A stretch of 64,000 nucleotides of DNA from Ophelia neglecta. Lineage: Eukaryota. The notes below the pieces were generated by a model. That model made no database searches. It worked only from the letters and a program-made list of their open reading frames with translations, and had not been told where the DNA came from. How positions within the stretch are numbered: the first letter of the stretch is position 1; every line of letters begins with the position of its first letter. Location of the stretch: NCBI GenBank assembly GCA_965285935.1, contig OZ260663.1, positions 55,056,001 through 55,120,000 of the forward strand, given 5' to 3'. This document shows, piece after piece, positions 2,601-44,600 of this stretch. A program made the translations under genes and the position numbers.

Positions 2601-5600
2601 CTGGAAAGAGGCAGCAAGAAATCTGCTCAGTTTTGGATTCAGATTAGATTTTAATTGTGTTAATAGCTTCATCTACTGATTACAATGACAAACATGCTGC
2701 TGTGGCTAAATTAGCTAGGCTGGGCTGGGTGTGTAGAGAACTGGACTGGAGGAGACATGGGGCAGTGACTTTTAGTCCTGATTCTATGGAACTCTGTTGA
2801 TTAGGCATACAGCAGAATTGACATAAAACCAGGTCTCAACATTTTAGAAATTTCAAATTTAAATATGGAAAAGAACTCACAGTTTTCCTGAAATAGTCTT
2901 AATTTAAAATCAACTAGATAAGATACCCCCTGAATACTGGGCTAGATGTGTATTGTCTCCACAAACTGAGATTAGTTGGGCATCCACAGGGTTATACTGT
3001 CAAAAAGTAAATTTAGATGGTTAGTAACATGGTATGACTATGTGATCATAGATACCAGCCACCAACCAAGTTCCCCCAAACCATAATCCTTATAATATAA
3101 AGACCACCAATCCAAAGGCCCACCAAAAGACCCTGTAAGAAATCTGCCCACCTCAGAAACCCAAGCCAAGCAATCTATTGCACCAGCCACCAGCTAATAA
3201 ATAGATTAGCATGAAAACATTTTGGTATGAGGTTATGAAGGAAATATTTTGATAATTATTTCTGAGGATGGGCAATGAATAGCATAAATATCTCTGAAAC
3301 ATCACTACATGACATATACTTCCTTCATAACTTCAAAATAATAACTAACATAAATAATGCTGGGTAATAGGATGCCTTAATACATTAAAATATGCAGACT
3401 TTTTCCAATGTTTTACAACCCATACCAAGTTGCAGACCACCCACAATTTCTCTGTAAAAATAAATAAATTCCTTCAAAAAGGAGGAGGTATCCCACCATA
3501 AAATCCACTTCCACCAAACCGTTGTTTCAAATGAGTTAATTAACATATGGCTAACAGCCTTCCATACTTAATTTAAATGAACACTAGTGATCTTAAAGTC
3601 ATCATGACTATTTTCCATCAGACCACACAAAACCTAATGCATCCTGTCACCCATTCATAACAAGCAATGTTTAATTTCATATAAATTTATGTAGAAATAA
3701 TCAACCATTATGTATCAAAATGGTTGATAACTCCTACACACATTGCACTAACATCTCATGCTTTTTTTGGTATTTATATATACAAACATAGTTACAGTTA
3801 AGAAGGTCACCAATGTGTCACTTTTCAGGTCAGCATGGGAGTGGCACATTTCTACACAACATAATAGTTTAAAAAAATATAAAAACAATTCTGCCTTCTG
3901 AACAGGTGTGCCTCTTGATGGCCAACCGATGGTAACACATTGATGACCAATGTTCACTATCATCAGAAAAACCAGGCTCCTAAGTATACACCTTGGCAAA
4001 AAGGAGGTTAACCTAAGATTTATAGCATTTTTATTTAGTGTGCAAATAAAATATGCAGATTGTAAATGGCATCTCCGGTGTTCTTAATGTTTGAAGTTTA
4101 ATTTTTTCTTCTTTTGCTAAGGTGCAGACTCGTGAGGAACTAGGGTATATTGTCTTACATAAAGATAGAGTTAAGTGTGTTTGCCTGATACATACCTTAC
4201 CGGCCATGGCAGCCTGCTGAGCAATGTCCAAAGGAGGTCCCAAGGACCTCCCTGGTAGCTCCTCTGTTTTCTCCTCCTCCCTACGCTTTAAGCATGCTGC
4301 CTTAGGGTTTAAGTTGCGCTCTGGAAATAAGCACACATTAAAATATGAGTTTCAAATTGATAAACTTGACAGATTACTAACTATCAAAACTGCTATTCAC
4401 ACCAAATAGAAACCAGATACACCTGAATATCTTATACTTTATTATTTTATTTATATATATCATACAATAACAATATTTAAAGAAATGTTCCATAGCATGC
4501 TTGAATACAGGCAGACATATAAATACAAAATGCTGTTAGGACATTTTTTTCTTCAATAAACCATAACCAGGGGTTAGTGGCCACTCTAGCTTAATTCTCA
4601 ATTAAAAGCGTTTACACACATAAAATATACACACTTGGGTTAACATAATATAATAATAAATGCTGTTAGTCCACAACAGAACATTACCTCTGACTTGCTG
4701 CTCTAAACTGGTTATTACTGACACTGCATGTTGCAAGATAGTCAGCTTTGTTTGGGGTTTGTCCGTGCTAAGGTGAAGTGAGCACATGCGACCCAATTCT
4801 TTGAAGGCCCCGTTGATATCACGCACACGTATCCTGTGGGGGAAGAGAGAAGACGGGAGTTTGGAGGTTGTTCATGCATGCACTCACATTCATACTAGCA
4901 GAGGTGGATTTAGAAACCATTGGGATAGAGGGGCGAGGGCATTATTGACAAAGTAGGGTTCCCAGGGTATTCCCATACGGACTTGGGTAGGATATGGGGC
5001 ATCTCTCGTAGGATTTTTTTTGGTCAGTGTCAGGGCTTGGGCCCAAGTCTTGCCGAGCAACACGGCTAGTACAATTCCTTCTGCAGCCTCTCAGGACTGT
5101 TCTGGCTTTTTCAAACATGCAAGCAAACCATGCAGAAGCATTCTGTGTCAAGGCCACTTGTAGATCAGGCAATCGGTTGCTTGAGAGTGGTTTTTACCTC
5201 GGACTTGTTGCTCAAGGGTAGTGATGACATTGACTGCCTGCTGCAGAATCATCAGCTTGGTCATCGGCTGACCATTGCTAGTATGGATAGAGATCATGTG
5301 ACCTAACTCTTTGAATGCTTCGTTTATGTCCCGTACTCGTAATCTGTTGGGCAATCCAGTGGCATTGAGAATTAGAATGGACAATACCTTAACAGCATAT
5401 ACAAGAAAACAAGCACAGTAAAAATGTCCAATCAACTGTTTATCATACACTATCAGCAACATAAGAAATTAATTTTCACTTATATTTACTTGTTATTTTT
5501 CCAATTTATATTTTCAGAAAATTGTATGTTCCTTGTTATTCTGTGTACTCCTGTGTCAACTTAGCCAACAACACTTTTGCTCTTTTCTCCGTAAACTTTC

Positions 5601-8600: not shown

Positions 8601-11600
8601 CATAGAAGTCCTGTGCATTGGTGTATTGTAGACTGGTATTGTACGGCTGTACTTGGTTTCCATGATATGTATTGTAAGGTAGAGTGGTATTGTTCTGTAG
8701 AGAGCCTTGCTGGTCCTGAATGGCACTCGGGTTGTATTGTGCAGCGTTGTTGTACCACGTACCACCTGAGGCGTACCCCTGTTGGTAGGCTGGTGGGAAC
8801 TGGGATATATCCAGTGGAAACTGGGAATACCACATGGTGCCGTTTCTCACACCATTAGCCACTAAAATATATCCAAATAGCTAAAGGAAGCTAGGACTGT
8901 CAGTGGAATTAAGGCTCATTAAGTTTCCTTGAAGTCATCAAGGGAGGAGAGCTTTGCCAATAAAGATGGTTGTATGACGGGTCCTTAGCCTGCTCTGGCC
9001 CTTCCCCTTCCGATCCAAGCCTACTCCCAGCCTACTCCACTCTGAAGCTTTTTCCAAATCTTTCACGATATGCTGGCTTGATTTGTTCAAGACCTGCCCA
9101 TCTTGAAGTATTTTGTACCAGTTGAATATACACAGATGGAAAACATTGGAAACAATTATCTTTGAAGCAGCTCATTGAGCAATATTGACCAACAGTCATA
9201 GAGAGCAGCATCCAATCACAGGGGCACAATCTTACCATCAGAACTTGGAAACCCAACTAGCCAGATACTTGGGGGCTTTGGAAAGATAACATCTAGCATA
9301 ACTGGTTACATGTGGTTCACATTATCTATGATGTTGAGATATACCATCTGAGCACTCAACATGTAATTTTTTTGAACTTTTTCTTACACACCCTTATGCT
9401 AATGCCCTTGGCACAGTTTTAATTTGAAAGCCATGCAATCACACACCATTGCCTGGAATGCGACTTTCAAGCATTTTGGGCCTGTGGTTTTCAAGATGAG
9501 TGTACATGCCTGCTATGTGGGAGTGCGACCAGTGATTTTGCCACTGTATATTTTGAATGATGTGCGAGGACATCTGAGCAGGTATGATATGATGTATTTA
9601 TATTACCCTCCTCTGTTCCTGCCGTTTTTCTAGAACATGTTTGATCTGTTTTGACACAAGAAGCAGAGACTCCTTCCCACTCCTTCCCAGCAACAGTTCT
9701 ACCTTGACACATGTAGTTGCTATGGAAACCAGGGGATCAACCCATCAATAATTACTTTCAGAGTGATCTGATGGGCAGATCTGAGAGGCGGCTGATGTTT
9801 ACACTGGTGACTTTGTAAACTGTAGATTCTCAGGGAGGTGGGTAGGGTTCCCTGCCTTTGACAGTTACAAAATAAACAAAGTGGCCTCAGTAGCTCCAGA
9901 TGTTGTGTACATCTCTGGCAGATACTAGCCTTCTGTGCTGGTCCCAGTCTTCTCTACAGACTAATTAGCTCATTTAGATAATCTCTCATCAAATGTAAGC
10001 AGAATACTCCTTGAAATATCATGGCGTTCTCTATGATGAAAGTTGGCTCAGCTTGGGCTTCAAACGAGCAGGGTCATGTTATGAGAACACATCAAAATGC
10101 TCACCTGGTTTCAATCAGGATCATCCTGGAGTAAGACAGCTCAGCAAGCTTTATGAGCACTATTTACCAAATTCATCTTCACTATGTGATGATCCCAGCC
10201 TCTTTAACGTGCTAAAAGGTGTCCATGCCTTCCACTAAAGCATCTTTGGAGAGCAATTCTCTCAAACCATGATCTTGAAGGTCAGCACAAGTAATTTCAG
10301 ATAAAGAATTTATGGAACTACAGATTTTTATTGTATATTGTCATATTTCCCCCCTTAGAGCAGTCAGGGCCAATTATGGCCTCAATAATGGAGTAGTGTT
10401 TCTGATGTAAATAAATCACCTGCCCTGGCCAGTCTGTTATAGATGAGTAGTCCAGCTGAGCCCAAGTGTTCGTGTTCATTTGCTTGTATGACATCACTTT
10501 GTAGATGTATCCCTCAGCTGTGTCTAAAACCTGAAGCAGGCCTCCATTACAGTACAGCACAGGCAGCCGACCCCTGCAACTTTGGTCAATATTTTGAGAC
10601 AGTATAACCCCGAGGTATGGCACCTTGTCAGAGCCCTGCTTCCAATTGCCCCGCTATTTACAGAGAAGACCCTGTGTAATTTTCCCCATACTTTCCATAA
10701 TTTTCCCCATACTTTCCTTTCGGTAATTAGCCATTAAATCGAGATGCCCCTGTGATTTTATTGGCTCCATCTTTGCTAGTAAAGCGATTCCTGGTTGTTT
10801 CCTGCCCAGTTGTTCTGTGGGGTTTGTGTAGTGGCTACAAGAGAAGATTGGCATAAGGGCAGAGAGAAACAACAAATTTGCATTCTCCGGTAGACCACAC
10901 GCGCTTGGGGGTTAATTCTGCACAGGACTGAAGCTCAAAACCTGTGGTGAACTCTTATTGGAGGGACAGAGGACTGAGAATAAATTCTAATCATCAGTAA
11001 TTGTTTGATGACTAGACTGTCAAAATGAAATCACAGCCTACCAGTTTCATGTCAATCATACAATCTCTCTGACTTACATCTTACAAAACTGATGACAACA
11101 AAAAGGCAATTGCTCAAATGTCAAGCAGCAACATACTAAAACAATTATTTATTTATAATGTTTTTTTTATCACTGTCCAAAATAGTTTGTGTATAAATAA
11201 TGTATGATAAAGTTCTTGCACACAAAATTAATGACTCGTAGGTTTTCTTATTTATCGTATAAGCAGGCAATATCTTACCATGTGTGATTCCATCATGCCC
11301 ATGCCCGGCGGGTATGCTGTGCCCATGTTGCCGGACATGAAGCCATTGGAATGTGGTCCGGGCATCATCCCGGGCATGTGCCCAGGGGGCATCATTTGGC
11401 CTGACTCCGCATGGTTTCGTAAGACATGGATGGCATCGTCCAGCCGTTCCTCCATTTTGCTTTGCTATAAGAAAATATCTTGGTAATAATACGTTGACAA
11501 TTTATTTTCAGGCATTGTCATTTTTGTTAATGCCAGTTAAGTTGGAATCCTTGTTAGTAACATTGAAACATTTATATGTTTTACTAGAAGTGATGAGGTG

Positions 11601-14600
11601 CTATGTAGAAAAAGGTTTTATTAGTTCAAATTTATGTTGTAAATGCTACAAGGCCAGATATTTGATAGGTGTACAATGTGGTTAGAACTGGTCATTCTAG
11701 AAGGTTCCTTTGAGGAAATGTTTCGGACCCATTTATCAGATGAGACCGGCCATTTTCACATCAGTTTCAAGATACCTGCCAGGTCCTGAGATTCTCAATT
11801 TCTGCTCCAAATTAGCAAGACCTGCAAACTCAAATATCTCAGATTTCCTTTGGACATTCGAAAATGTAATGGGTAATACTATTCAGCAGTTGTCAATTAG
11901 TGGGAACCACATATCTCCAAAACTCCGGGGTTCTGGTGCCTACTACTGTGTGATGAGGCTTCCTGCTGCCCGAAGCTTGGCCAATACATATTTTCATGAA
12001 TATTTAGGATTTATCCCAGCAGGTCACTCTGGTTAAAATGTATTCTATTTCTTTGTAGAGCTGGAGGTGGCTCTGGCTTAAACTTGCCATTTTCTCATCA
12101 ATTTGGAGGTAGCTATTGAGTTAGCATCCTGATAGACCATTTTTACCCTGACTTTCACCCAAAGTGGTTGACGTCTGCCAGGATGGTATTGTTTATCTTG
12201 GCACCTTTTTCTTCCTCCCTCAGTAGATTTCTCTTCCCCCACCAAATCTGTTACCCATCTGATGTACAGGTAAAAAACTCAGGCTGGGTGCAGCCTATAA
12301 AACATCAGTGTTTGTCTTGTCAGAAAATGTTTCCACATGTGCAAGATGTGTACAAATGTCAAAACTTTTATTACCGCTGTTCATTTCAATAACAGACAGA
12401 ATTTTGGTGCGATCTTGCCTAAATATTGATAGGATTTGCCCAGCATGAAAGGTGACGATATGCTTTCCAGATATGCCTTGATCTGTTGTATTGATGACAG
12501 CTTCCCAACACTCAAATCTACATCTATGAGCCTTTTTTGAATGCTAACCACAGAAATACAAATCCAAGCAGAGAACTACACTAAAAGAGACTGACATATT
12601 ACAGGGCATAAATTAATTAAAAGCCAACCGACACCCAGCAGTCCAACACCTTTATCTAATATGCTAAACCACAGTAGTTCTACAAAACTTCTTTATAGGC
12701 TCTCTCACCATATCTCAGAAAGATAAAATGCATTTTCAAAAGCCAATGATGCCATCACCCTGCTCAAGCTACTCATTATGTGGTAATCAATCCGTGTGTA
12801 TTTGTGTGCACCATGCATCCCTGGACCTGTATCAGGTACTCTTAATAACAAGCCTTTAATTTATCTTTTCAATGCAAAGTTTTTGAGGTAAAATGCATCC
12901 GATGTTGGGGTTACCTCTGCCTGGTCCCGTAAATAGTGAATAGCATCATCTAACTTCTCTTCCATTCTTGAAGTCTATTGGCCAGTGTGAAAAAACACCA
13001 AAGATGATTTGCGATGGACACAACTCTTATTAATGCTTATTATGGTCATTTTATGAATTAGTTAGTCAGGTAACACATTAAGTGCCCAGAGATGAGACAT
13101 GTTTGTTTAACACCAGTGCCACAGGAATGTTAAAGAAAACTGTGAAACTTCCCAATTATTGCTGTGTGCCGACCAGTCAATATACTGATACACAAAATTA
13201 AATACAACATGCAAAAAAATGTGAACTAGAACTAGAATTAAAAGTAGCAATAACAAACTACAACCATCAAGTTATAAACATCAAGATGCAGGAGCAAATC
13301 TACAATTCTACCACTATCAATACTCCTGGACTGGCCATTCAGAGCTCGCCGCTATCACCAACTTCTTACATTTACACACAAGGCGTTGTATATATATATA
13401 TATATATGTATGTCTTCGCCTGTCCATGCTTGGTGAAACTTTACAAATTTACCAGATTAGAATCTACAAAATACCAGAATATGGATTTACAGGCTCTTGA
13501 CTTCTAAATTTATAAACAGATTGCAATTTAGGAAATACTATAATGCAATAGAAATTAAGTAGATGCTTAAGTAAATCAGAATGTATTTCAAAAAGCATGG
13601 TCAGAGCAGAACTGATTTACTAAAGAATGGGTGAATAAAAGTGTTGATTTACATTTGGCCGGCTTACCAGTGAGTGGAGGTGGCTTTCAAAATGGGGTGA
13701 GGTAGTGCTTGTGGTGGCTGGCCCCGGCCGCGCCCACTGCTGGCTTGGGGGACCTGAAACAATGGTGAGAACATGGTGAGATCAGGGAGAGGACATGGTG
13801 AGAACACAGTGAAAACAGGGTGAGAATTAAGTAAGGGTGAGAATAAGTTGGAGAAACTAAATGAGACTTGGTCGGGACTTAAAGATACTGAGAGTGGAAC
13901 ATAATATCAATTACACCAAATCTATAATATGAGCTTGTTTTTTCTGTTTTATGCACAGTTCATTTTCATCCTGAAAGGTTTGGGATTTAAACATAATTTA
14001 AAACAAATTCAATCAACAGGGTTTTTATTTTAATTAAATCAAAGTGTAAAAAACAGGGCACTTGCATATATTTATAATTAACGACTAAAACATGGATTAA
14101 TATCCTAAACAGATAGATTGCTTTTTCCCAAATTACAGAAATACTGAAAGGCACCGAAAATCGGAATGGCTCCAAAAAAAATCGGTCTTCGAAAACTAAA
14201 GTGCAGATTATTTATGACCAACATTTTGAAGAGTTTCCTGTTATAATGGTCTCTCTAAGTATATTGAGGATGTCTGTATCCACTAAACACAAATGCTCTC
14301 CAACTGGTAACAGCTGATCAGGTGATTAAGGGCAGCAAACACAACAAGGCAATTGTTTTCTTGCTCAATGGTGCATCAAAAGGGCCTCAGATGGTGGGCG
14401 TGGGGAAGTGCCCTCGGAGAATTAGGGCCAAGAAGCTGTGAATGAGGGACAGCTCTGACATACTGTTGCCAGGTAGTACACATGGACAAGTGTACTAGAT
14501 GGTTTGCTCTCACTGATCACCAGCAGACTAGGGCTGGTGGAATTACACAGCAGCAATTGTTTCTTGTCCTGATTCCCAAACAGATTTGTTTATACACAAA

Positions 14601-17600: not shown

Positions 17601-20600
17601 CATGAAAATAACAAGTAAGCCAGTAAAACAATATATCACTGATTAATTTACAATTTGACTTACAAAGAGACATATCTGTTTGATAAATCCTCATTTTCGG
17701 GGCATAACACTTTTATTTTTCAAAGGGCCAATGACACAGTACTGATGGATGCTGCTGTGGGTGATGATAAGGCTAGACTGACTAGTCATGTGGGTCTGGA
17801 GCTCCCAAGGCACTCTCATCTCTCTGCCCTGAGATTTCCACCAGTGTCTGGAGATTTAGGACAGATGTCTTGAGATTTGGGGTGGCTGTTGTTTGTCATA
17901 GACTGATGTGTCCAAGGTGACAAGCCATGCCGTTGAGCAATCTTTCACTGTGGCTGTCATCTTTCACCATGACTGTCACAACATTGGCATGTGCTATCAT
18001 GTTAAAACTTACTGTTCTAAGACTAAACACATACACCAGCATGATTAGTTAGGCCCTGCTTATGACTTAATTTACAAATACAGTCACATATATGTAGGTC
18101 ATTAAATAATTGAAAATCATTTAACATTTTTTCAACCTGGCTGCCAAGTTCTGTTAATGTTTCCACTTGCTAATTAAAGGTACATCAATATCCTGTCATT
18201 ATGACTGCTGGACTAGTTGGTGAAGGGAATCAATAGCACTGCTCATTGTGACCTACAGAACTGATAGAACCGAGAGGATGACTGAAAAGGCCAGACAAGA
18301 TATCCAGGTGTCAAACTGCTACACTGAGTGTAGCTTAAGGCAGTCAAACCCCTAAGAAAGCCATCCTGCTCAAGGGGGTGATTTTTATTTTAATGTACCA
18401 ATGTACCTGAGCCAGTGCCAGTCTGGTCTTCAGCTTTATCAATATATGTCCATTAGCAGGCAGAACCAGAGGCTACTGCTCGTCTCATAGACAGCAATGT
18501 GCAATTGTGAGCAACTGTTAAAGGAAGTAAATAGCCATTACGAAGGCCATGTATTTCTGGCTAAATGGGATCACTGAAGTGATGATCTGCACTAGCCTTT
18601 TTTAAATCACAGAACAATACATCAAGTACCCTAGTCATTATCTCTGCCACCCATCATGTATCAACAATTGACAGAGAACACATTGAAGACTCCAGGCCTT
18701 CTCTGATCTCAGCAATATCCATACAAGGAAAGGCTATCAGCAAATTGAAGAAGAACTACTATTAAGACTGCTAGCTCAATCACCAATGACACTGGTGTTA
18801 TATGAAATACATGGGCAAAGGCTGGCATAAGTATGAATGGACAGGTAAGAGCTTCAGAGCTTCACACTGACTGACACAAGGAAGATTCTCTAGAAACAGC
18901 CCAAGCATTCAGCAAGCCTGATACAGTATCTTGTGAGCAACTCTAGTCTGTCAGTTGGGTACTTGCACTATCACCAGCTTGGCATAACTCAGGGTTGCTG
19001 GCAAAATCCACCACAGCTACCTCAAATGAGTTGAACACTAGGTGGCCAGCCCAACCAGTGGCTATCATGCATCTGAGGTTAAGATGCTGATCTGACCTTT
19101 TGTCTGAGCTGATCCGGGTCTGTGCGGAAGGAATGTCTGGCATGGATGCCTGGGGGCATCCTGGGGCGACAGGCTTCTAGGTACCCGCCCCTAAGAGCCT
19201 ACCTGCTAGTTAGGTAGGCTACTGTCAAACTGCCCTAACTATTGTCACTAGGCTTTTTATCGTACATGTAATTTATATAAACAAAAAACTTCTGGCTCTA
19301 TACTGTGTAGATAAAATAAGTTGTAAAAATATACTTACAGATGCTAGGGCTTTGCCAAGGGCATCCCCAGTCTGTGAGCTGCCTTGGGGAGGGGGCCCTG
19401 TGCTTGGACCCCCTCCCACTCCCATCTCTGAGCCATTGATAGGGGGCGAGGTGCTGGAATAAGCTGAAGAGGAGGGAGGCATTTGGCCGCCTCTGAACGA
19501 AGACATGGGTGGAAGACCGCTAGCATTTTGTTGCATCATTTCATGGTTCGGAGACATAGGATGATAACCCTGCAAAAAAGTGTAATAAATAACACATCAG
19601 AACATATTAATACTGGTTAAAATCACATTGCCAGAATGCTTGTGGCGGAGTGCCTGCCGACAAGGCAAGTGGCTGTCAGAGCCTGGTGAGGGCTTGCTGG
19701 TGAGGGGGTTCTAGCAGAGAGGGCCAGGGGAGTGGGGACCATCCATCACCTACATCTACAACACAGGTCTCCTCCACAGGAGAGCAGCCAGGTCACTGAT
19801 GGATGTCTCCCTGGAGTCACATCCCTATTACAAGCTTTATATCAGGGTTCAACATCTACAATGCTGCTACTCTCCATCCCAACTGAAATCTGGCCAAACA
19901 CTATAACCTCCCGAGTTCCTAATTGTCCTGCCGTCCACATTAGCAATTGACACTGCAATCTAGATTGATTTCTACGAGATCCTGCCATAAGAAATGTAAT
20001 ATAAATGTCAAGTGATATCAGCAGAATGACCGTTGGCATCCAATAGAATTTACACCAATCACTGACAAACAAGAGAAATGAAATGTTGTATTTGAGTACA
20101 AACCAGTTAAGCCTGGTATTTGTGGAACAACCTACATGTTTAGGAAATACCATCAAAGAGAGGGATTGAGGATTGACTTTCTAGGTGATTTGAGCACATC
20201 CTTTTCCAATAATAATTAAATTGATAGTACCCTGAATGACAGACAATTTTCAATGGTGGTGAGGGGCCAACCCATGGGTATTCAATTTAATGAGCTCCAG
20301 GCTAAAGACTCTGGGGTAGCTATTTTGAATGATTTCATTCCGGGCTCATAGATCTGGGCTCCTACGAAGGAGATTGAATATGGCCAGCACAATAAGCTGG
20401 AGTGCTTTTATACAACTAAATTGATCCAAAACCAGCCCTTCCCTGTCACATCACTGGAAGAGAGAACAATTTCTTATATCAGCTTTATCCCTCAAACCCA
20501 TCAGCAAGATGGGCAATGTCCCATGAATTAGAATGTGGCCCAGTCATCTGCTACAAATCATGGCCAACCTCACGCTTGACTGGAGACGGAAGAATATTGT

Positions 20601-23600
20601 TCAACTGGGAAGACAGCAAGAGTCAAAGATAAATCACTAAATAAGAAGACAAATTCGATTAGTATGGCTTGTTTTTCTGTAGTCTGCTCTTTATTTTGCC
20701 AAGAGAAGCAATTCTCATCTTGTGAATCACTTTCAAGAATGATTTGGAATGCTAGACTTATTACGTTTTTCACTTTGTGGGTGGTATTTCTAGTGAACAG
20801 CTTCTGAAGCTGGGAAGCGAGCTTTTTATGTGCTCTAAACAACGGTAGGGGCAGGTTAAGTCTCCATTACAGTGTGACAGGCCTTCACCTCACTGCTCAA
20901 ACTAATGGCATTAACGTAGTTTTCAAGGATAGACAATGGTAGAATATGCCATACCTTGACTCAATTAATGTCATTATGAAAGCAGGGAGTTCAATAGATA
21001 ACCACTGCCTCTATTGACACTGTTTTAATTTTATGACAAGCAGCAAAATGTGAAGTCAAGGATTCAAATGTGACTTTAAATAAAATAGGAAATCTCAGAA
21101 ACAAATCCCCTTGACCTTGTGAAACATATCACAATAATCTAAAATAGTAGAGATACTGGATCTCTAGGTGGGTTAACAAAAAAAACTATCAAAACTAATG
21201 AAATAGTTTGGCCAAAATACTAGTTAAGGATTGGACTATACTGGACCCAACTAAATGCCAAAATAGGAACCATTTTAATAAAAAATTCTTTTATTTGAAG
21301 AAATGTGATTTATTTTACTTTCATAATAAAACAACTGTGATAACTATTTATTTGTCCCCCTAATTTAGCCAATTCCCTATAAGATAAATTTCATACATTT
21401 TACATTAAAACAAACTGGACTTACCATATGTTCTCTGGCATGAGGCATGTTATAGGATGAAGCTTGAGAATACTGTCCACTATTGTGCAGCATGGAGGAT
21501 GGGTAACTCGATGTCGGTATGCTGTTCGTCGTCATCGACCAAGGGTCTGGGCCTGGACCTGGGCCGGGCGGACCATCTGATGAAACACAAAAACACTAGT
21601 AACATACCAGAAACGCAGACGCACAATACCAACCAGGCTATAACTTCTTCTGTGTGTTGATAATGTAGATTTTCTGGCATGGTTACTACCATACTAATCC
21701 TTTTAAATATATATATCCTTCTATTTCACATGAAATGCAGTTCAATCTGTATTGTACACAACTCTATATACTGTCAGTCTTTGACGGCCGTAAGATCTTT
21801 TGACCAGCCAACAATGTTTGGCTAGCGAGGAATGTCACTTCTCTGATGAGACTGGAGCAGTTCTCTGCGAATCCGACAGAAGACTAACATTCAACACGCT
21901 GCGACTTGACTGGTCATTGACAAGACAAGCAAACACTTCCCACCAGAGAAAGCCTCGCTCCATTACTAGTCTCCAACATCAGCTAATCCCCCAAATGGAA
22001 ATTCAAACATGCCCTCACAAAAGGTGCTAATCAGCCATGTTTCTGCAGGCCAGGAGCTTTGTGAGAGTGTTGTCCTGTCAGTAATACATCAAGACTGTCT
22101 GTCAGGCCAAACAAATGCCTCAGCATTTCTCCATATTCCATTCAGCATTCATTTAATCAATTTTTTGGAACTGCCTAACAAACTATTACTGCCAGACCAC
22201 TGGGACAATAAAGGTCCTGATAAATCAGGAGTCTACATAACGGAGGGCCAGGCCTGCTCACCGCTACCCTCACAAGGACTCTAGGTATATAGCTAGCCAC
22301 TGACAATAGTGTCCTGGACTGGGTCTCCGATTCCTGTGTATAATTTAGCGATTTGAACTCCGAGAGGGAGACACTTTCTATGAAGCAAGTCCCTGGTAAT
22401 CAATAAGTCTGTCAAGTGACATTGCCATTAAAGGTACTTGTGTATACCCATGGTTTCTAAATCATTCTATCTTTTATGCACTTGTAAGAACTAAATGGCA
22501 CCGCTGGACATAAACAAGTTGTCCACCGACATGTTACTTGTCTTTTCAGGTTTTTAGTAGATTCAATACACACCACTTCCTATCAGGGTTTTAACATGTA
22601 TTGAACCTGCCTAGCAGACAATGTAAAGCTACCACTGGCCACCAGAGTGGAAGGACAGTCAGGGTCACTACTTGGTGTATTCCTTTCATATTAGTGACCA
22701 GTACATTTTTTATGATGATCTTTATCCTTCACTGTATAGCTAACAGAATGCTTTGAAAATGCATTTGTTTTAACTTGACCTTTAGAAGAGGTCAAACAAA
22801 TTTATGTTCACTGCTGGATTTCTTTTTATCTTACTGATACAAATTCCAAAGAATTGCTTTTAAACTTGGCTATCCTAAATTAAAATGTACCCTCAGCTGT
22901 ATGTTTTTAATGATCTATGCCCACCCTGGCCAAAACATGTGCTGTTTTGTGTGACACAATTCCCCCACCTACAAGACAGTAGAAAGCTTTGGTAGAGTTG
23001 CAGATCAGGCTTTTAATACTACTTTTAAGTGAAAACCTGTGGGGTGAATTAAATTAATTATTTTTCTTTAACTACTTCAGATTAAACTCTGCCTGCATTA
23101 ACCATCATTTGGCGACTTAATACCAGAATCTAGAGAACTGATTCCACATCACAAACTGCTTTAAAGAAAATAATGGGATCTTAATTAATTGAGAGCACAA
23201 GGGGCCTTGATAATCTGCCAGTGATAGCTTTGCTAGGATGTAACATATAGGTGTAGGAGCTGGGTAGTCCTAGGTTCTGGCCACCCCTCTACCACAGCAG
23301 ACAAGATTAGACAGAGGACTGTCCTTTGAAGTCACAGATCACCTCTACTAAATTAATTACATCATCTCCAGCCAGATTGGAGCCTGTCTCTCATCTAGCC
23401 TGGACCAGATCAGGCTAATCTCGGCTAATCAGAGATGAGAAGTTTAATGATCCACTTAACTCCAGACTTAACTCTAGACTATCTTATAAAGACTAGCTGT
23501 CATCTTTCAGAAGATAAGACATTAGTTGTCTCAATTGAATTTAGTTGGTGTACCTTACTTTTCGAATCCATTTGCAAATACATAAATGCCTAAAACTGAA

Positions 23601-26600
23601 GGCCTTACATGTCTGGCAGATCTTTGACATTGGTAATTAGTTGTATGATCAATTGTGAAAATAAGTGACAGACATGTATAAACTACTGAAGGAGATTTCA
23701 TCACTGTAGGTGGTAGTGGTGTACACTTCACTCTTCACTGTTTGTGGATATGATTATGTATAATAACCAACTTCCTGCCACGGTGAAAGGCGACGGGTTT
23801 CGGTGAAAGGCGAACGAGTTTCGCCAACCCTCCCTGTCAGTATCATAATATTAGCGATCAAGCCCGAAGTGGTGAAAGGTGACGGGCTGTGCAGACTGGG
23901 CTGGGAGCCTTGCCTGATTATGGCAAGAAATATCAGAAATATCAGACTGTTGTTAGGCAAAACAAAATGGATCACCTTTCTGTCTTGGAATCTCCCTACC
24001 CCGCATCTCTCTCCAAATACTTGACAGACTATAGGTTTCAAGCTGCCTGTCGGATCTGATGCTTGACAATACAGGCCCTAAATTGCCATCAGCTACCAGA
24101 TCAATTTGCAGAAAGCTGCTATACTTTCATCTGGCATCAACTAATTTGGTTTCCAATACAGAGATGATAATTAACCTCAAGGTTTCTGCATACTTCCCAG
24201 AAATTTCCAAATATTTTTTTGACAAGACCTGCCAAAGTTTGGTTTAAAACAACATTTAGGCAATATACTATGAAGAAAACTAATTATTGCAATACCAATC
24301 TCTGTCAAATGCTTTAAAGTATGAAAGCTGAGGCCTGCACCCGTTTTAACTTGATATTTTTAAGTGACAACATATTCCAAAGTAATTACAAATTTCAGAT
24401 ACCAAAATATAAATACTTAAATACTATTAATTACAAATTCCTCATTCTATGGCATAAATGTACATTTTAAAAGAAGTTTCATGTACTAAGATAGTTTAAA
24501 GAAGTTCCAAAATGATAAGCAGACAAGTACAAACTGTTGCTCAAAAATTTCTTTTCAATTAAACATTTGCCTTATTTATTATTATTTTACCTGGATATGA
24601 AGCATATTCTCCATGATAGACGCCCGGCCCCCCTGTTTTGGGGGAGGGATATCGAGAGGACTCCTGGCTAAACTCCTCTGGGCTTGGTGAATATACCTGG
24701 AAAAATAACAAATAATTACTTGATACCATGAACATGGTTACAAACAAATTAAAGAAAAGGCCTATATATTTTCATCAGAGGCAAGCACTACATGTGGCAC
24801 ATACTCCCAATCAACATTACAATCGTTTCAAGGCTTTAGTAAGCCAGTTAATCTATATTACTAGGTACATATTTGTTCCAAGAATGGTCTTGTTTCAGAA
24901 GGAACCAGACTTTTGTAGTTATTGGTTGTATAATGCAGTCATCCATGCTGACATTTTGATAGCCACTTGCAAAGAAAATTGAGTGTGTATTTCTTTCCTG
25001 ATGTTATCATACAATGAAAACATATCTTGTCAGCAGGAGCTGCTGGATACATTCTCTGTTATCTCCCAGGCCATGCTACTTGCAGCTCATATCTCATAAG
25101 AAAGCATGACTATCACAACCCAGTATTTTACTTCTCTGCTATTTGTAACCATTTTTCCTCTGGGGGATATTCAACAGATATCTAACATTCAAAATGACTC
25201 GAACAAAATATTCACAAGCAAAATGAAATAAGAATATCCCCCTCAGAACATGCTGTTTTCCTATAGAAACTTTTGATGATTATTTCTCTGTTTTGTGCAT
25301 CCGTAACTTGCCATGTTTTTATACACAGGAAGACATCTCCAAGAGTTCAAAAATAGTTTGAATGACAAAGTTGATGAGAACCAGGCCTGTCAGATCCTGT
25401 TACACAACTTTAATAGATAGATATGAAGTACACAGGCAGTCTCCCTGGTGTCCATAGCCAACCTCTAATGGGAAAACTCTTATACACCACCTTCTAGCCA
25501 GTGTAAGGTTCTCAGCACAAGAGATTTGAGATTTGTATGACATCGGGGTGCTATGAATGGGCTCTTTTTTATTTTTAACTCAGACACAAGGTTTTTAGAA
25601 GGGTAGAAGCCAGAAGAAGTAGCAGGATAGATTTTGGGATAATCATAGCTACAGACTTTGCATCGTTTAGGACAGTGATTTCAACCTCCAATGAATAACA
25701 TCAAATATGAATGACTTTAATACTCTCTCGCCTCATCCTTTAGACCTAAATTTCTTCTTGGGGATTTCATGTGAAGACCTTTCTAATTAGATTTCAATCA
25801 GTAAACGCACACACTCCACCTCTGTCATTTGGAGATGGCTGGCAAGTAAATAGTGGTGGCTTACTAAACACTAAAGAGGGCACTGCCATCAGGCAACCTA
25901 CCATTGACAACTACGCTTCTAAATCAGAACAAGTCCTGTGAAAAATCCAGCATACAGATTGGCTTAACATACAGTTGATTAATCAAATTTTCCTCTATAA
26001 CTGGTCTACAACGAGCCCTGTTCCAGGTTATTAGAAAATTGGGCAGACTGATTTATAAGCTGTAGATTTCTGGTATTCTAATCATGTCCCAAGCATCAGA
26101 GGATAGGAGGTGCCTGAAAGTCAAGCTATTAGGAGCTGGCTGGTAAAGATTCCTAGGAGAAATCAGAACAATTACCTGCCGGGCACAGCTAATCTATTTT
26201 GGAAAACACCAGAATGTCAACATTGTTTAGTGCTACACAGGATATGGATGGAAATCAAATAATAACTACAAGTAATAGGTTTCATTAACTCTATTACTAT
26301 CTTATTCAGAATGAGGCCTTTTCTATGAAAATTAATTCTCACTAATATACATGTAAAGCATAATTATATTAGTAATTAACACATTTGAAAAATACCTGTT
26401 CAAACTACATACTTGCACAGACACTTCCATGTGAAATTACACTGTTAAGGGGGGAATATAATTCTAACCTTAAATCTGTTAATTGCTTTGAGATAACAGG
26501 ACCTCAATATTTAGTTTAGAATATTTAAAATAATCTATGATGTAATTGACAAGTGTATCCATTTCAATTAAATGAAGCAATTTTTTTAACTGTTAAAACA

Positions 26601-29600
26601 AGGGTAGTATTTCACAGAACCTCTGGTATTTGTAAGTGTTCAGAACAACTCATGGGTTCTCATAAACTATGTACGTTAGAGTTTGCAGTACTCACCAACT
26701 TCTATTTACAATTTCTAAATTTTCCACTTCCAGCAATCTTAACCTTTTTCTACAGATTTACACAGAACAAAGACAGATTTGTATACAACAATGTCAGACT
26801 CTATCTGGTGATAACAAGCACTCGGAGAGCCTGGTAAAGTGCAAGGATTTTGTTAATCTTTGGATCACTTTTCATCTACAGTAATTGCAGAACATTTACT
26901 GAGGAAAAAATAGTAGTTTTCCACACACAACCAAACTTTAATTGTCCAAGAAGTGTTTTCTTACTTTCTCTATATTTGTAACAAGTGGTAGGAAATAATT
27001 TACAGATTAGCAATGATTCCAGGTCTGTGCTCTTAAGAGCCAAGTGGCAAGAAGTGTTTATAAAGTACCATTTTTTGGAGTTTAGTAGGAGTCATACTTA
27101 CTGAGCCTAGTTTTCCGGGGACATAGACCAGAGGTCTGTAGTAGGGATATGTACAGAACATAACGGCTTTTCACGCACTCACTCAATCCACTAGGAAATG
27201 ACTCTCACTTCTCAAAGATCACCACACTTATCTCCTTCCAACAGTTTGTAACTGATAAAGTATTTAAATCTCCTGTGTGAGACAACTACATCCTTTCTAC
27301 ACTAATGCCTGTCATTCACACACATGGAAAAAACAGGCTTTGATGAAAACTTTTCCAATGCCCTGAGATTTGTTCCAACAACCTCAATAATTTTCTTACC
27401 AGACAACTTGCAATGTACACCAAATACTGTACACCACCCTAAAACTCATCACTTCCCCATCAGTACCAGTGGACTGCTCTATTTGAACTCTGGGGGTGCC
27501 AGCTTCCAAACTGTTGCTGTACACTATCAGCCAGTGTAATCACAAAGGGACACCCTCCAGCCTTTACCCTCTCAAAAGGTTGAGTCTATTATCAGCCAAG
27601 GGGTGACAGAGGCCAAAAGATCACCACAGTTATTTCACTGTGGGCACAAAGGCTCACCAAACTGCTGAAGACTTCCTGCTGCTTTATTGTTACAGTTCCA
27701 TTAAGTTTCCTTTTATTCATGCCATACTTTAAGGAAAAGCAAAAGCAACTTTGCTCATCACCCAATTACCGCCTACTCTGTGAAGTTTTATCTGATGTAA
27801 AAAACATATTCAAGATGGGGCATTAACACTCTTAGCTTCCTTGTAATTTGTCCTGAATGATATCTATTCACAATTTTTCCAATTATGAACTAATCAAAGG
27901 CATTACCGCCAGCTGCTGCTACAACAAATTATTGCGTGTGTCACTTGGGTCAAGCATTATTTGCAAATATTACCAGAAAATCAGCAATTTAATAAAGGTT
28001 AAATGCATTTCCTACATGCAACATTTGGAGTGAAATGCTTGATGAGAAAAGTATTCTTGATTATTTTGATTACAAACTCATTAGCTAACATCAACTGCTT
28101 TCTCGGAAAAACAGGTCATATCCAGTTCTTATACTGAGTAATAAAAATGCCTCCTATAAAAACATCATAAAAGTTTGCTTATTCCTGAAATCTACTTTAC
28201 AAGCAAGTTACTGAGTGATGTACAAGGACACAAGCCATCTAATGTCTTAACATTCTACCAAGTCAAAACAATGTCACCAACACTTTGTAGAGGCATTGAG
28301 ATGACAGGAAGCTATCTACCAGACTTCTGATAGAGATGAATTTTTATTACTCTCAAGCCTACAATAAATCGCTTTGCCAACAGAGGTTTTTGACTTGCCC
28401 TCTGTGGTATAGTTGTAAAGATTGTATGAATATCAAAGAAGTGGCTGTGGTAAGAGGATATGCCTTTCCCCAAATGACAAAACTTGCTAATTAATGACAA
28501 GCGGCAAATGGCTTTGACAGCGCAGCCAGAAAACCAGATGTAAGAGATCTGAGCTAATCCAGGACTGGGGGAGTGTGTTGCTCAACTCTTAATAATCCAT
28601 GCTTGGCTTGTGGAGAACATGATTCTCTCTGACCCCATGGAATAAGTTAATTCTACCCACCCTGCTGTGACCAAAGTCACCGCCTTTACACCACAATACT
28701 ACTATGCTACATTCGAGATCCTGGTAAATTCCTGTTGGCATGAGTTTCTAACGGGTTTGGTAATTCATGTGGACAGCGCCCTCAACAGATTTCTTTCTGC
28801 ACTGGTGACTTTGGGTTCTGGTTGCAGGGAAACCCAGCGCCGCCGGGTGATAGTGGTCACTATAGCCATTTGCTAGGTTATTTCTAGTTTGCCGTCTATA
28901 CTAATGTTCTTAACTCATTCATCATCTCTATCCACACTGGCCAAGGTTTATGTTCCAGCAATGTATGACTGCTTTTATGACTAGGCTGGTTGGTGCACCC
29001 AAGTAACACTAGATCTCTGCTCAAGTAAAAATGCATTTCCAAAGAAAGGTCATAAAGTGAAGTAAAGGTCCACACATATTGATTGGTAACTCACTGTAGT
29101 AACTCACCAAGTCAGGAGTTGACCTCTCCCAACTCACCCGTGGCAAGGCTAGCTGACTTACTTCAAATTGCAACAGTGAAAGTTTTTATATCAATAATCA
29201 TTTCAAGACTTCTTTGGCAATAAAAGTCATTGACTAATGGACTGATGGACAGCTTTCAAGGTCCAGAAGTTGTGCGAAAGGTGAGCAAAATATCACCATT
29301 GATAATAAATGTTGATTGCAGAAACCAGTACGTTTTTCTCCAAATGAAAAATGACAAGTTTAAGAGACAGAGAGTAATATAACTCATCATTTGTACTGAG
29401 AGCAGCCTATGTTTTAGCATCACATGCTATACTATTACAGGGAAGTCTATCTAAAAGATCATTGCTAGAGACAGAAAAATTGACATAGGTTACATTTGCT
29501 TGCCCGCCTCTTCCTGCCCAATCAAAACCAGGAGGGGCATTTCAGAAAAAATCAGGATAAACCTTCAATCTTACTGAATTTACCAAGCTTCAATCTCTGG

Positions 29601-38600: not shown

Positions 38601-41600
38601 ATACAAATCATTTATTCTGCATTCTTTACAATGATTTAGAACAGTACTGTAAATTCACATACTACATGGAGGCAAACACTCTTACAACAATTTCATATAT
38701 TAAGATCTATATATCAATATAGTCTGTAAAATATGATATAGAGCGCCTGCATTTCCATAATTAATATATGAAATTCAACTACAGTTTCTACTAGCTAAAA
38801 GAAAGTACCATCACCATAATAAAAAGTAAAATTGTGAAAGTCACAGCGCTCTAACAGGCTACCACCACTGTCATCACAGACATCGCCACCGCCCTATTGT
38901 TATATTGTTATTACCTGCATCGGCTGTAATTCTGCATATTCCAGCGAATCCATGAATCTCATTGCGAGTTCTACCATGATTGAAATTATCTAGAAGTCAG
39001 TTGCACAACAATATCCAGAGCTCGGCGGTCTTCCACGCCAGTCAGGGACAGAAAAAGTCGAAAGTAAGTTCCAGCATGCGTTGGGCAGTTCTTCAGTGAT
39101 TAGACTGTGTCAGCATGCTGGCTGCCATACCTTTGTGTGTTGGTTGGTGTATGTGTTGTCCGGTGTGTACACTCAGGCTTGTGTGTGTTGTGTGTCTATG
39201 TCCTGTGAACCACGTGGCGACAGCTCTAGGCCCTATCTCTTTACCTGTGTGTTTAAACTAGAGAGGTGTGTACTTCATGACACAGCCCCAGGGCTTCAGT
39301 GAAACAAAAGCAATCAGCAGTCTGAGACAAAGCCCTTTTGCTAGAGAGATAATTGCGCGGGCTACCTTCTCCCACATACAAAGTCTGGCTGAAAGTGTGT
39401 GCGCCCTCTCCACGCTCCACTGGACTGTAACCAGTCAGTCCAGGACAATACACATACTACACAAGTGTGCCCTATGGGACAGCCGCAGTGTGCCTAGAGT
39501 GTGCCAATGTCACGCTTGGCTGCACTGAAATTCTTCCCGCAGTAATTACACACACAGCGATTTCAAACGACTATTTCAGTGTTCAAATACTAGAATCATA
39601 CCTGGTCAAGAATTCAATTCACATGGGATGTTTCAGTACTGAAGATATAAGGCCTGGGCAAATTGCACTTTAGTTTATAGGCCGTATAGGTGAAAGGGAC
39701 CTCTCCAGCAAGTGAGACCGCAACACAATGGCAGGCAAAATAATGCCTGTTGCTTCATAAGCCCCTGCTAGATTAGGAGTTGGTTATCGATTTGCGTTTA
39801 AAAACAAATTCTGACTCCACTGCATCTCTCGACTTAACTGTTTTGCAGACACCAATGAAGTGCTTTTGTCCTGTTTGCCGCTGTGTGCCTGAATAACAGA
39901 CATCGATTGAAATTGTGAAAAAGTCCACAATATATCACATCAAGCAGGAACAGTTCGATGCAGAACGTGGTTAGTCATGCCTTTGATGGGCCTTAACAAT
40001 GACACGGGTAAATAGGTATGGCTCAAAATTAATGAAAACCCATCTAAAATCAATGAAAGCGTTCAATACAACATTGTTTAAGCATCCCTATCCAAATATC
40101 GGCAATGTTAGCTAAAACTCAGCGTGCAGAGTTCCCCATCTATTTAAATCAATAACTGTTTCAATACCATTCTGATGAAACATTGCTGCAACACGGCTTA
40201 ATCATTTGAAAATTAATAATTGCAACACAAAAAAGAGCCACAAGTTGAAAGTCTTCTAAACTAGCTGGTATTTTATTTAAGCAGAAGCAAAAAATGGCCA
40301 ATTACATTCTGTGCTAGATTATCAGAGGCCCCTTTTGTTATTGTTTTCTGCATATCGGTTGCTTTTTGTTGTATGGTAGTGTTCTTTACCAAGAATAAAA
40401 TCTTTGACAAACATATTTATTTAACTTATTGCATACTATAATTTGTTTGTCGTTTAATCCTGCATTTTGACAAAATATTTACATGACATTTTGTCAGTTT
40501 CTACAATATTCAATAAAGTGACAACTAGTCAACAGGTAAGACATTCCTATCAAATACAACCTGTGTACATTTATATATTAAAATAGAATGTTTCTCATGG
40601 CCAAACATCCAACTTTCCATTTTGTGGGGTGTCACTCTGATATTCATAATCCATTAAAATGCTGAGGGGGAACAACATGCAACATGTTGCCATAATAGCT
40701 TGACGAGCAATAATATGCAAACGATGGCGACAGCTGGCTTGACGAAAGCTAGGTATTCATTTGTGTGTGTCACAGTGTGTCAAAACTACCTGCTTTTTGC
40801 ATAGTTCATCACTGTCTGACATATTAAAAAAAGATCTATCCTGTAGGGCAAAATTAAACAGGAACAATTGTTTTACCAGGTAATTGTCTCCAGAATATTA
40901 ATGCTTCTAACGATAACAAGACAGGTTAATAGTACAGTTTTTAAATATTGTTGTCCATAGCTAAGCAGTCACTTATTCCACTTCCAGCCTAGACTCTAGC
41001 TTTCCAGTGCAACAAGTTGAGATGAAGCAAACATTGCCTTATATTAGGTACTTGTGTGAGGCACAATAGTGTGCTGCACCCTGTTTGAAGAAGTTGGAAC
41101 TATTTAACATGCAGCAGCAAGTTGTGCTAAGCTCCAAATACAAGCAAATGGTGGGCGTTGCATACATAATTTACATTGAAAGCATGATAAATTTATGTTA
41201 ACACTTGCCTGAGCAGATAATTTTGTGAAACAGGCACAAAAGCTACTCATTTCAATAAAATATACCAGATTCCACAAAGGCACAATCCCCATATAGGGGG
41301 GTTGCTGTCCCCATAACCCCCACCCCACCCCACACCATGAAATACAGTTAAAGTTCTTATGCTTATATAAATCCCTCTTAAGATCCAAAAAGCAAAACCC
41401 ATCTGGTATGTGTTCTCATGGTTAGGATGGTATTTCTGTTACCATCTTATGTCAGTGGGTCGTATTTCATCACACCTTTTGACAATCAGGAATCAATTTG
41501 GACAATCAATCAGCACATTCTAGAAGCTTATAGCATGATAAAGGATCTACAACTTAGCCAAGCAGCTAACATGGGGAATGCAAAAAAATTTCGCTGACAA

Positions 41601-44600
41601 TTTGATGCCTGGCCCACAAATTTGTGCCTGAGCCCGTTGCTACTTTAGCCCATAGGAGTATCAATAAGCAGCCCAGGTAGGGTGATTGACTGTCACATGA
41701 AAGGGAGAGGGTTTTTCTCCTCTGTTCATACCACTGCCCTCCCCACCAGAGACAAGCACCCTAGAAGAACCGAAGCCATCAGACAACAGCCTTTCTTGTC
41801 TGGCAGTGCCAACTATAACTATCATTCATCCTTATAATGGCCTCTATTCCCATCTGAAAGTATTCAACTAGACCAAGTAAACCTATTCCCATATCCACAA
41901 ATTATCAATACACTGACAGAGTTCCCATGTTTTTGTGTCAGTAAAAAAGTCAAAGACTTTTCTTGCATTTTATAATGTTAAAATTATGTTTTTCAAAGTG
42001 TACAGATAAATTTTGGTGTGTGGCCCTTTCTGTAAACTGGCTGTACCCGTATTTCAAAAGAAAAGGCTCCAGAAATTCCCGTTTCGCGCCCTTGCCATCA
42101 CTGAACATATTCCATTTTGTTCGGGATTGAAGACTTCACCAAAGCACTTGCCAATGGGCAGTTTTTAGTTGCATATCTGCATAATTTGTGAATCAGTAAA
42201 AAAAAAGTTGGTAACGGTAGCCAATGATGTGTGCCAATACTCCCTGTCGGAGATGACATCACTAAAGTTCAGCTCCTAATGTTGCAGGGCACAGCACTGC
42301 ATATGACTAGTCTACAATTTAAGTAGAGCTATGTTATAATGTGCAAAGCCTTTTTATACATTAATCATCTTCACATTTTTTGTTCTAGTCATTCAAAGGG
42401 TTGAGAGAAAATACCAGTTAAACAAATTCTCCATCTTAAATTCCCTTGCACAGCTGAAAATAGCCGTACCAAACTAGCTGCCCAGTGACTCTTTAATTGC
42501 AATCAGGCTTTTAAGGTGAGAAATATGGCTGTTGTTCAGAGGTATGAAACATCTCCCGGTGGGCCCTTTTGATGGACAAATCTGACATTCTATAAATTAA
42601 CAATTAACATCCAGCCGTGCAGATGCATGGATTGCAAAGGAGAAGGGTTTTCATTGGGAATTGGAAAGGTAGTGTAATAGTAATTAATGCAATAAAAATA
42701 AATGCAAACAAAAGGATGGTACACTAACAGCCAGTCACATTGGCTTTTGGTGTTTTTAGGACACGAATGCCAGGTTTTGGTACTTTGCTGACTTGGGAGT
42801 CCATGTACATTTGAGGGGTGATATCTTTGTGATTAAAGGGGCCTTGGAAGCTTTTGAATGATTCCTGGTTTTCAATGTATAGCTCTTTTCAACTACAACA
42901 GGTGTACTAAACCTGATTATGCGCTTGCTTCTGATGGAAAATATGATAGGCTCATTATTATTTAGATGAAAGAATAAAAAAATGAAAGCATTTAATATTC
43001 AAATATAAATGACTGTAAATATTAATAAATATTCATCAAACTATAGATATTTCCATGAAGAAAAACCAACTTACTGAGCCACTTTTTCTTCTTTTTGGTT
43101 CGGGAGTGAACTTTCCTCCACGGCCTGGAAATAAATATGTTCACATTGGTGTACAATGAACGAGCCCAAATAAAAATATATAACAAGACTTCCACTGACT
43201 TTTATACACATATTTTAGAGGTTACAGGAGGAAAATATTCAGTTGAGTAAAATTTTAGAAGTCCACTAGATTGATTGGCAAGGTAAAAAAAAAAGTGTAG
43301 CTATGTCACGGGTAAGCCTAGAGCTTAGTTTTGATGGGTATTAATTTGTCCTAGGAGACATTTATTTCATGTCATAGGTTTTCTGAATTTCAGGTGTAAA
43401 GAGTCCGGAAAAACTAGTTAACCTCTTGCCATATACACTGGCCGATTGGTAACCAGCACACCCGTTTTTCTGACACATAATTTGTCCTGAATCATTTCCT
43501 TTAGTTTTGATGTGAGCAGCGTGCCAGATGGCGTTTGGCCTTTTTGACTGACCTCTGTTGTGCAACATTTTTTCAGTGACTGTCTCATTTATCTTCCATA
43601 TATATACTGTCACAAAAACAAGAGTACAACAATGCTATGACGTGGACAATTGGCATGAAATCCTGGAGGTGAAGTATATTTGCCAGTGTAATAAAACAAA
43701 CAAATTTAATAAATTGTTCATTTTTTTGTCCAATGCCTATTTTTAAATGTACAAGTCACAAATTATAATTTATTAGCAAACTCCAATGATTTAGTACACA
43801 TGACTCTGGCTCCTCTTCTTGCTCATATTTTAAACTTTATTTCAGACCAAAACTGATCTGTTTAAAGCATGTGCAAACTAATTTGAAAAATCAGGTAGAC
43901 AGAAAAAAAATGCTCTAATATACTATAATGTGGTAATGGTATTTGGCTTGCTCTATAGAATTTTCATTGCAATTTATATCCTACAAATTTATGATATAAT
44001 GGCTAGCTCTAGTCATTTTATTGCAATTCATATCCTACTTTTCATATGTGATATGATATGATATGATGGCTGGCTCTAGTCACTCAATTGCATTGGGTGG
44101 TGCAGACAGTAAACAGTTCATCTTACATTTACAACATACAAAAGATACTTTAATGGAGTCTTATGTATTAATCTACCAAACACCTTAAGCTAGAGGTAGG
44201 GAGCAGTCCTAAAGAGTACATTAATGTCTATATAGTGTCTGTGTATTCTAGTAAAACGATAATGTAAAACAGTAATATAAAAAAAAACATGTTTTTTAAC
44301 TGGTAATTTAAGGCATCTGTGTACCATTTATTTTTTAATATATCTTCTGTATGATTGTCTGCCATGAGGTTCAAGGATTTAGGAGCAATTTAATAAATAA
44401 TTGGATAGTATACATTCTATGAGAGAATATTGATTGATTGATTTATATTTATGTAATTACATGATCATATATTTCCTTGTGGATAAGTAGGTTTCAAAAT
44501 TCTTTACCTCGCATTGATTCTTCTAACTTCCGACTACTAAATGGGTAATAAGGGGAGCCCGGCTTGTTACTCTGCATGTCAGGAGACATTGGCATATTAT

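Follow-up and report, generated by a model that had tools for sequence, protein, structure and literature searches.

A conserved alternative first exon in a lophotrochozoan E-protein gene and its probable identity with the vertebrate Alt exon

The closest described systems are the vertebrate isoforms HEBAlt, encoded by TCF12, and E2-2Alt/TCF4-A, encoded by TCF4. In HEBAlt and E2-2Alt, the Alt exon lies directly upstream of the exon that is shared with the canonical form (PMC3346973). The Alt domain of E2-2Alt is 80% identical to that of HEBAlt, and the domain of HEB and E2-2 has been called conserved 'through vertebrate evolution' (PMC3346973). Published work on it concerns regulation in T cells and in a neural context (PMC9385190, PMC3137626). 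TCF4 isoforms without the nuclear localization signal (NLS) enter the nucleus via their partners (PMC3137626). A full-text literature search retrieved no paper on an invertebrate counterpart of the Alt exon. An exon of this type is described here in a 64,000-nucleotide stretch of the Ophelia neglecta genome (contig OZ260663.1), referred to as the window. Taken as a whole, the statement that positions 27102-27161 (minus strand) are a conserved lophotrochozoan E-protein alternative first exon, the same as the vertebrate Alt exon, is considered probable.

Like HEBAlt, the Ophelia exon is a short alternative first coding exon (about 20-23 codons) located in the intron just upstream of the VY[AS]PS exon. 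In both cases, the junction is in phase 0, and AD1 and the basic NLS are lost while AD2 and the bHLH region are kept, which for Ophelia is predicted from the gene. The two tyrosine-rich peptides have a similar start, followed by an L-[MV]-Y block and, close to the end, a lysine. Unlike HEBAlt, the window peptide is three residues shorter, ends with K-L-G-S and lacks the YYY triplet and the PGMG middle stretch. The YYY phospho-motif is likewise absent from the other lophotrochozoan Alt peptides, as is the PGMG stretch from the invertebrate ones, and the window gene has no lymphoid context. The architecture is also shared with E2-2Alt/TCF4-A, from which the window exon differs in the same way as from HEBAlt; TCF4-A is set beside the window exon by description only.

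The window carries most of a minus-strand gene for a class I bHLH protein (E-protein; TCF3/4/12, daughterless). The assignment is based on an E-protein-type HLH followed by a 16-residue tail, the LDDAI motif of AD2 and the LDFS motif of AD1. The AD1 exon, of the ELSDLLDFS type, is found at about 55146487-55146540 of the contig, about 26.5 kb past the window end. An upstream canonical exon with the basic NLS (KRRK) occupies 43075-43124, ends in phase 0 and is followed by a GTAAGT donor. The first shared exon (24591-24696) starts with VYSPSP and is predicted to take the splice from the NLS exon as well as from the Alt exon. Further downstream follow a shared exon ending in a 10-residue motif (19339-19569), two copies of an AD2-type exon, namely copy a with the LDDAI motif (12915-12965) and copy b with a 12-residue sequence in an exon that extends downstream (11396-11455), and two copies of the HLH exon (copy a, 5199-5342; copy b, 4689-4832). 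The last coding exon (2550-2600) encodes a short C-terminal form ending with MGHHL and a stop codon, and the same C-terminus is present in the annelid transcript protein P0017. All these exons of the window lie on the minus strand. The tandem duplication of the HLH and AD2 exons recalls the E12/E47 exons of vertebrate TCF3. Both copies of the HLH and AD2 exons are also held by the Lamellibrachia model P0164, and oyster isoforms show two HLH variants.

The original prediction had placed this E-protein in an apparent invertebrate, and the genome agrees with it. A search of the 762-Mb assembly with the HLH exon returned only two copies, both in the window, which makes a single E-protein locus and therefore excludes a vertebrate source. 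Compared exon by exon with 277 retrieved E-proteins, the gene agrees best with those of two siboglinid annelids, Lamellibrachia satsuma (P0164) and Ridgeia piscesae (P0165). The summed tblastn scores reach 799 bits for Lamellibrachia, 610 for Ridgeia and about 500 for cephalopods, with colinear exons. The window gene has its duplicated AD2 and HLH exons and its short C-terminus in common with annelid sequences. By this evidence, the gene belongs to a lophotrochozoan, most probably an annelid. The gene is a single pre-duplication E-protein and not TCF12.

The candidate exon, read from 27161 to 27102 on the minus strand, consists of an ATG (27161-27159) and 19 sense codons. It directly abuts a phase 0 GTAAGT donor (27096-27101), and the same donor is equally placed in Lamellibrachia (L004), Patella (L009) and Pomacea (L006). 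The encoded peptide starts with MFCTYP and carries tyrosines at positions 5, 7, 8 and 13. The exon scores 53 bits against the profile described below, is present as a single copy in the 762-Mb genome and belongs to no repeat. It sits in an 18.3-kb intron that is flanked by the NLS exon (43124-43075) on one side and by the VYSPSP exon (24696) on the other. This intron directly precedes the VYSPSP exon, with which the unique, short coding exon is in frame. The acceptor of the 24696 exon, a pyrimidine tract followed by cag, opens in phase 0 and matches the donor. Since the AD1 and NLS exons lie upstream of 27161, and the AD2 and HLH exons downstream, a transcript starting at the Alt exon would be without AD1 and NLS. 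The predicted gene layout thus gives the AD1-less, NLS-less isoform retaining AD2 and bHLH that characterizes the Alt type. Its length can be put at roughly 500-560 residues by analogy with P0165 (529 residues) and the Pomacea protein P0293 (545 residues). Re-reading of the minus strand reproduced exactly the coordinates and translation given in the original prediction. The in-phase fit to VYSPSP, at a junction that is itself predicted, and the loss of AD1 and of the PKRRK signal, both of which it had claimed, follow from the same gene layout.

In the siboglinid proteins P0164 and P0165, the Alt peptide is found at residues 11-31, joined to the equivalent next exon, and 17 of the 20 aligned residues are identical to the window peptide. 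These models begin 10 codons farther upstream; the corresponding stretch of the window contains stop codons. At the Lamellibrachia locus (L004), the Alt exon ends at a GTAAGT donor in phase 0, as in the window. In the gastropod Pomacea canaliculata, RefSeq isoform X10 (XP_025081085.1, P0293) begins with the orthologous 20-residue peptide, with 11 of 20 residues identical to those of the window, and its exon (L006:69939-69998) follows the canonical upstream exon and precedes the VYSP exon. The exons of Pomacea X10 and of the L. satsuma and R. piscesae models agree with the window exon in intron, phase and donor and are its direct orthologues. The database annotation of these models does not tie them to the vertebrate Alt isoform.

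Four of these Alt peptides were combined into a lophotrochozoan profile, which was used to scan the loci. Matches were obtained in Patella vulgata (L009:66559-66618, E 1.5e-11) and in the oyster Ostrea edulis (L010:38501-38572). Both copies follow the NLS exon and precede the next shared exon; they lie on the coding strand and end in phase 0 at a GT donor. Outside the orthologous place, no profile match reaches E values of 1e-11 to 1e-14. The search of the orthologous intron across phyla with an Alt-exon profile, which had been proposed as a check, recovers new copies in Patella and Ostrea, and the motif is kept in the relatives of Ophelia, namely siboglinids, Pomacea, Patella and Ostrea. A second Patella match (L009:71252-71281) was rejected as spurious, as it consists of the VYSP exon's acceptor together with its pyrimidine tract. 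The Patella and Ostrea exons (L009:66559-66618 and L010:38501-38572) are missing from the retrieved RefSeq isoforms, 7 for Patella and about 23 of 32 for Ostrea.

For the comparison with vertebrates, Alt isoforms of hagfish (P0102:1-23), sharks (P0224:1-23, P0226, P0221), a ray (P0235) and mammals (e.g., P0241:35-57) were used. The retrieved vertebrate isoforms begin with MYCAYP, except for one shark with MYCTSP, and end with a lysine and one further residue before VY. In mammal, gastropod, crinoid, priapulid and mussel alike, the Alt-type and canonical forms diverge at the V of VY[AS]P, and the canonical upstream exon encodes the basic NLS. This junction residue is identical in six phyla-level comparisons. 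The joint alignment displays M-[YF]-C-[TA]-[YN]-P as one block and, colinear with it, [LF]-[MV]-Y then [GTS]-K as another. In each of the vertebrate Alt peptides, the first six residues are matched by positions 1-6 of the lophotrochozoan profile (9 bits, about 7e-5 per peptide), and the same comparison yields a colinear L-[MV]-Y match. Among 432 E-proteins, the only profile matches outside the training set are vertebrate Alt starts. On balance, the exons of Ophelia and vertebrates probably share ancestry. The pattern M-aromatic-C-x-Y-P...L-x-Y...GK, which the original prediction had read as shared, is retained in its start hexapeptide, its L-[MV]-Y and its late lysine; the vertebrate YYY is not kept. 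The accompanying proposal of an Alt isoform ancestral to bilaterians gains from the common intron, phase, junction and start, and loses from the shortness of the similarity and from the profile built on vertebrates only, which misses the invertebrate exons.

The main competing explanation accepts a genuine, conserved lophotrochozoan first exon but gives it an origin independent of the vertebrate Alt exon. The six-residue start would then result from chance or convergence, for instance through constraints on a tyrosine- and proline-rich tip. It is supported by the vertebrate-only Alt profile, which produced noise-level matches over five loci, with no invertebrate Alt exon among the best 25. Composition-preserving shuffles against the vertebrate Alt peptides gave p values of only 0.01-0.2 (0.013 for the window, 0.02 for Pomacea and 0.19 for Lamellibrachia). 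Several unrelated first exons use the VYSP acceptor in other taxa, as seen for crinoid X6, hydrozoan P0136 and Pomacea X8 and X9. New first exons therefore arise readily at this junction, and convergence is possible. The first exons at the VY[AS]P junction of crinoid X6, priapulid X4, the short mussel form and scallop X3 are different or strongly diverged. None of these four matches the Alt profile significantly. The exons of crinoid X6, priapulid X4, the scallop and the hydrozoan were considered as Alt homologues and rejected on that ground; crinoid X6 thus provides no intermediate. Nor does amphioxus. The E-protein gene of Branchiostoma floridae is intronless, with one uninterrupted exon of 686 codons (L007:2001-4061), whereas the genes of the other animals compared have several exons and span about 26 kb or more, most of them over 55 kb. 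It looks like a retrocopy which replaced the original gene. It cannot, therefore, carry an Alt exon, and no invertebrate chordate bridges the gap. Independent origin has to account, however, for the intron, phase, junction residue and length class common to both exons. It must also explain that Patella and Ostrea (MYCTYP) share five of their first six residues with vertebrates (MYCAYP), with a second colinear block, and that the Ostrea copy has its insertion where the vertebrates have a longer middle part. Furthermore, when 186 first-exon-like open reading frames from five loci were ranked by their score against the vertebrate Alt peptides, the window exon took first place, with the Pomacea exon following behind a real AD2 exon. 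An independent origin is, on balance, rather unlikely, although it keeps by far the most weight among the alternatives.

A second alternative denies the sequence the role of a first exon. It would instead be a conserved non-coding element, such as an enhancer or a regulator of splicing within the intron, or else an internal cassette exon. Two observations speak for it. The promoter of the Alt exon is presumed, and in the molluscs the similarity also takes in a few in-frame codons ahead of the ATG. The region 27162-27270 (minus strand) is the putative 5'UTR and core promoter. It contains an Inr-like TCAGTT at 27255-27250, where the original prediction had noted one, and an A/T-rich TATA-like octamer at 27268-27261, about 15 nt upstream of the Inr-like A. 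This octamer is too near the Inr-like A for canonical spacing, and neither motif alone is promoter evidence. In the alignment of the window with Lamellibrachia DNA, the flanks do not align and no conservation is seen upstream of the Alt exon, including the promoter region. The conserved stretch runs from the ATG to the donor and ends exactly there, which argues against a non-coding element. The same holds for the codon periodicity. Between the window and Lamellibrachia, 12 of 20 third codon positions differ but only 4 of 40 first and second positions, and the corresponding values for Pomacea and Patella are 10 of 20 and 5 of 40. As third positions changed and first and second positions were kept, the comparison points to purifying selection on the 20-residue Alt peptide in annelids, gastropods and one bivalve. 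As for a cassette exon, the window has TGA stops in the same frame, 4 and 8 codons before the ATG at 27161. These would terminate a reading from upstream, so that translation of this frame starts only at that ATG, and the other open frame would put the VYSPSP exon out of frame. Pomacea RefSeq X10, moreover, uses the orthologue as its first coding exon. A non-coding or cassette role is thus very improbable.

Short ATG frames followed by GT are common in introns, but a chance frame beside a chance GT with no coding role is hardly credible here. The 18.3-kb intron holds only two candidates of the form ATG...GTRAG in phase 0 with 12-35 codons, one of which is the exon itself. Two phyla share the peptide, its third codon positions being saturated while the first and second are conserved, and models of three species have it as their annotated N-terminus. 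It gives its strong profile matches solely at the orthologous place, and its start motif (M[FY]C[AST]YP) occurs once in the 64-kb window, both strands included, and in 0.07% of 3000 first-order Markov resamplings of the intron. We are therefore highly confident that 27102-27161 is a real, conserved coding first exon.

If the exon is what it appears to be, the transcript would start from its own promoter within the 18-kb intron that separates the NLS and VYSPSP exons, and splicing would join 27102 of the Alt exon to 24696. The short protein predicted from this junction would keep AD2 and bHLH and lose AD1 and the basic NLS, which is the architecture of HEBAlt, E2-2Alt and TCF4-A. By analogy with vertebrates, it may enter the nucleus by dimerising with partners that bear an NLS (PMC3137626, PMC9385190), and the tyrosine-rich tip of the Alt peptide could serve as a regulatory site. 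The promoter, the expression in Ophelia neglecta and the function are all presumed, the last of these from vertebrate work. Should the exon be homologous to the vertebrate Alt exon, the isoform would date back to the protostome-deuterostome ancestor.

Other first exons seem to share this intron. Two assembled transcripts, one from an annelid (L003) and one from a hydrozoan near Clytia (L011), have a unique first exon joined to the VYSP exon, with an in-frame stop upstream. They are therefore evidence at the RNA level that AD1-less isoforms from this intron exist outside vertebrates. The ending [DE][YF]xELxPxQ is common to the first exons of the annelid transcript P0017 (residues 1-28), Pomacea X8 (P0292:1-30) and Babylonia X5 (P0397:1-35). 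A profile of this ending points, with weak scores (E about 0.7), to 38977-38915 in the window and to L009:55297-55323 in Patella. Both places are in the same intron, upstream of the Alt exon, and fit in position, strand and phase. The window candidate, here called Alt2 (38915-38977, minus strand), has a start codon, 21 codons, an end in ELQPMQ and a GTAATA donor in phase 0. In Pomacea, a second candidate alternative first exon is also present at L006:62622-62711. A broader and more tentative idea, which we would not yet favor over its opposite, is that, in E-protein genes, the intron preceding the VYSP exon already served as a hub of alternative promoters before Bilateria arose. At least two distinct first exons, the Alt exon with MYC[AT]YP and the one with [DE][YF]xELxPxQ, may then have been inherited from the lophotrochozoan or bilaterian ancestor, and the Alt peptide might be a regulatory tip, itself conserved, with a role older than lymphocytes and the vertebrate nervous system.

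If the Ophelia and vertebrate exons are the same, the E-protein isoform without AD1 and NLS is an ancestral bilaterian feature and not a vertebrate innovation. The conserved residues, i.e., the M-Y/F-C start, the tyrosines and the late lysine, would become candidates for the core function of the Alt domain. Tractable invertebrates that have only one E-protein gene would also lend themselves to tests of Alt function. At the level of annotation, the exon is one that the isoforms retrieved for Patella and Ostrea do not include.

Some further observations were made at the locus. On the minus strand, an open frame of 311 codons (1682-2617) overlaps the last coding exon in a different frame. Its product is rich in serine, glycine and proline, and its length exceeds that expected by chance at 39% G+C. 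No significant similarity was found between the 311-residue product and either the long C-terminal tails of molluscs or the 306-residue second open reading frame of the annelid transcript L003. The ends of the NLS exon (43075-43086) and the Alt exon (27102-27113) both read K-x-G-S followed by GTAAGT, the last two codons being identical. This likeness could be due to chance, to splice-site constraint or to a partial duplication of which it is a trace. Among three genomic DNA runs, no differences are listed in or around the Alt exon, and dense polymorphism is seen in the intronic stretch at 22750-23150.
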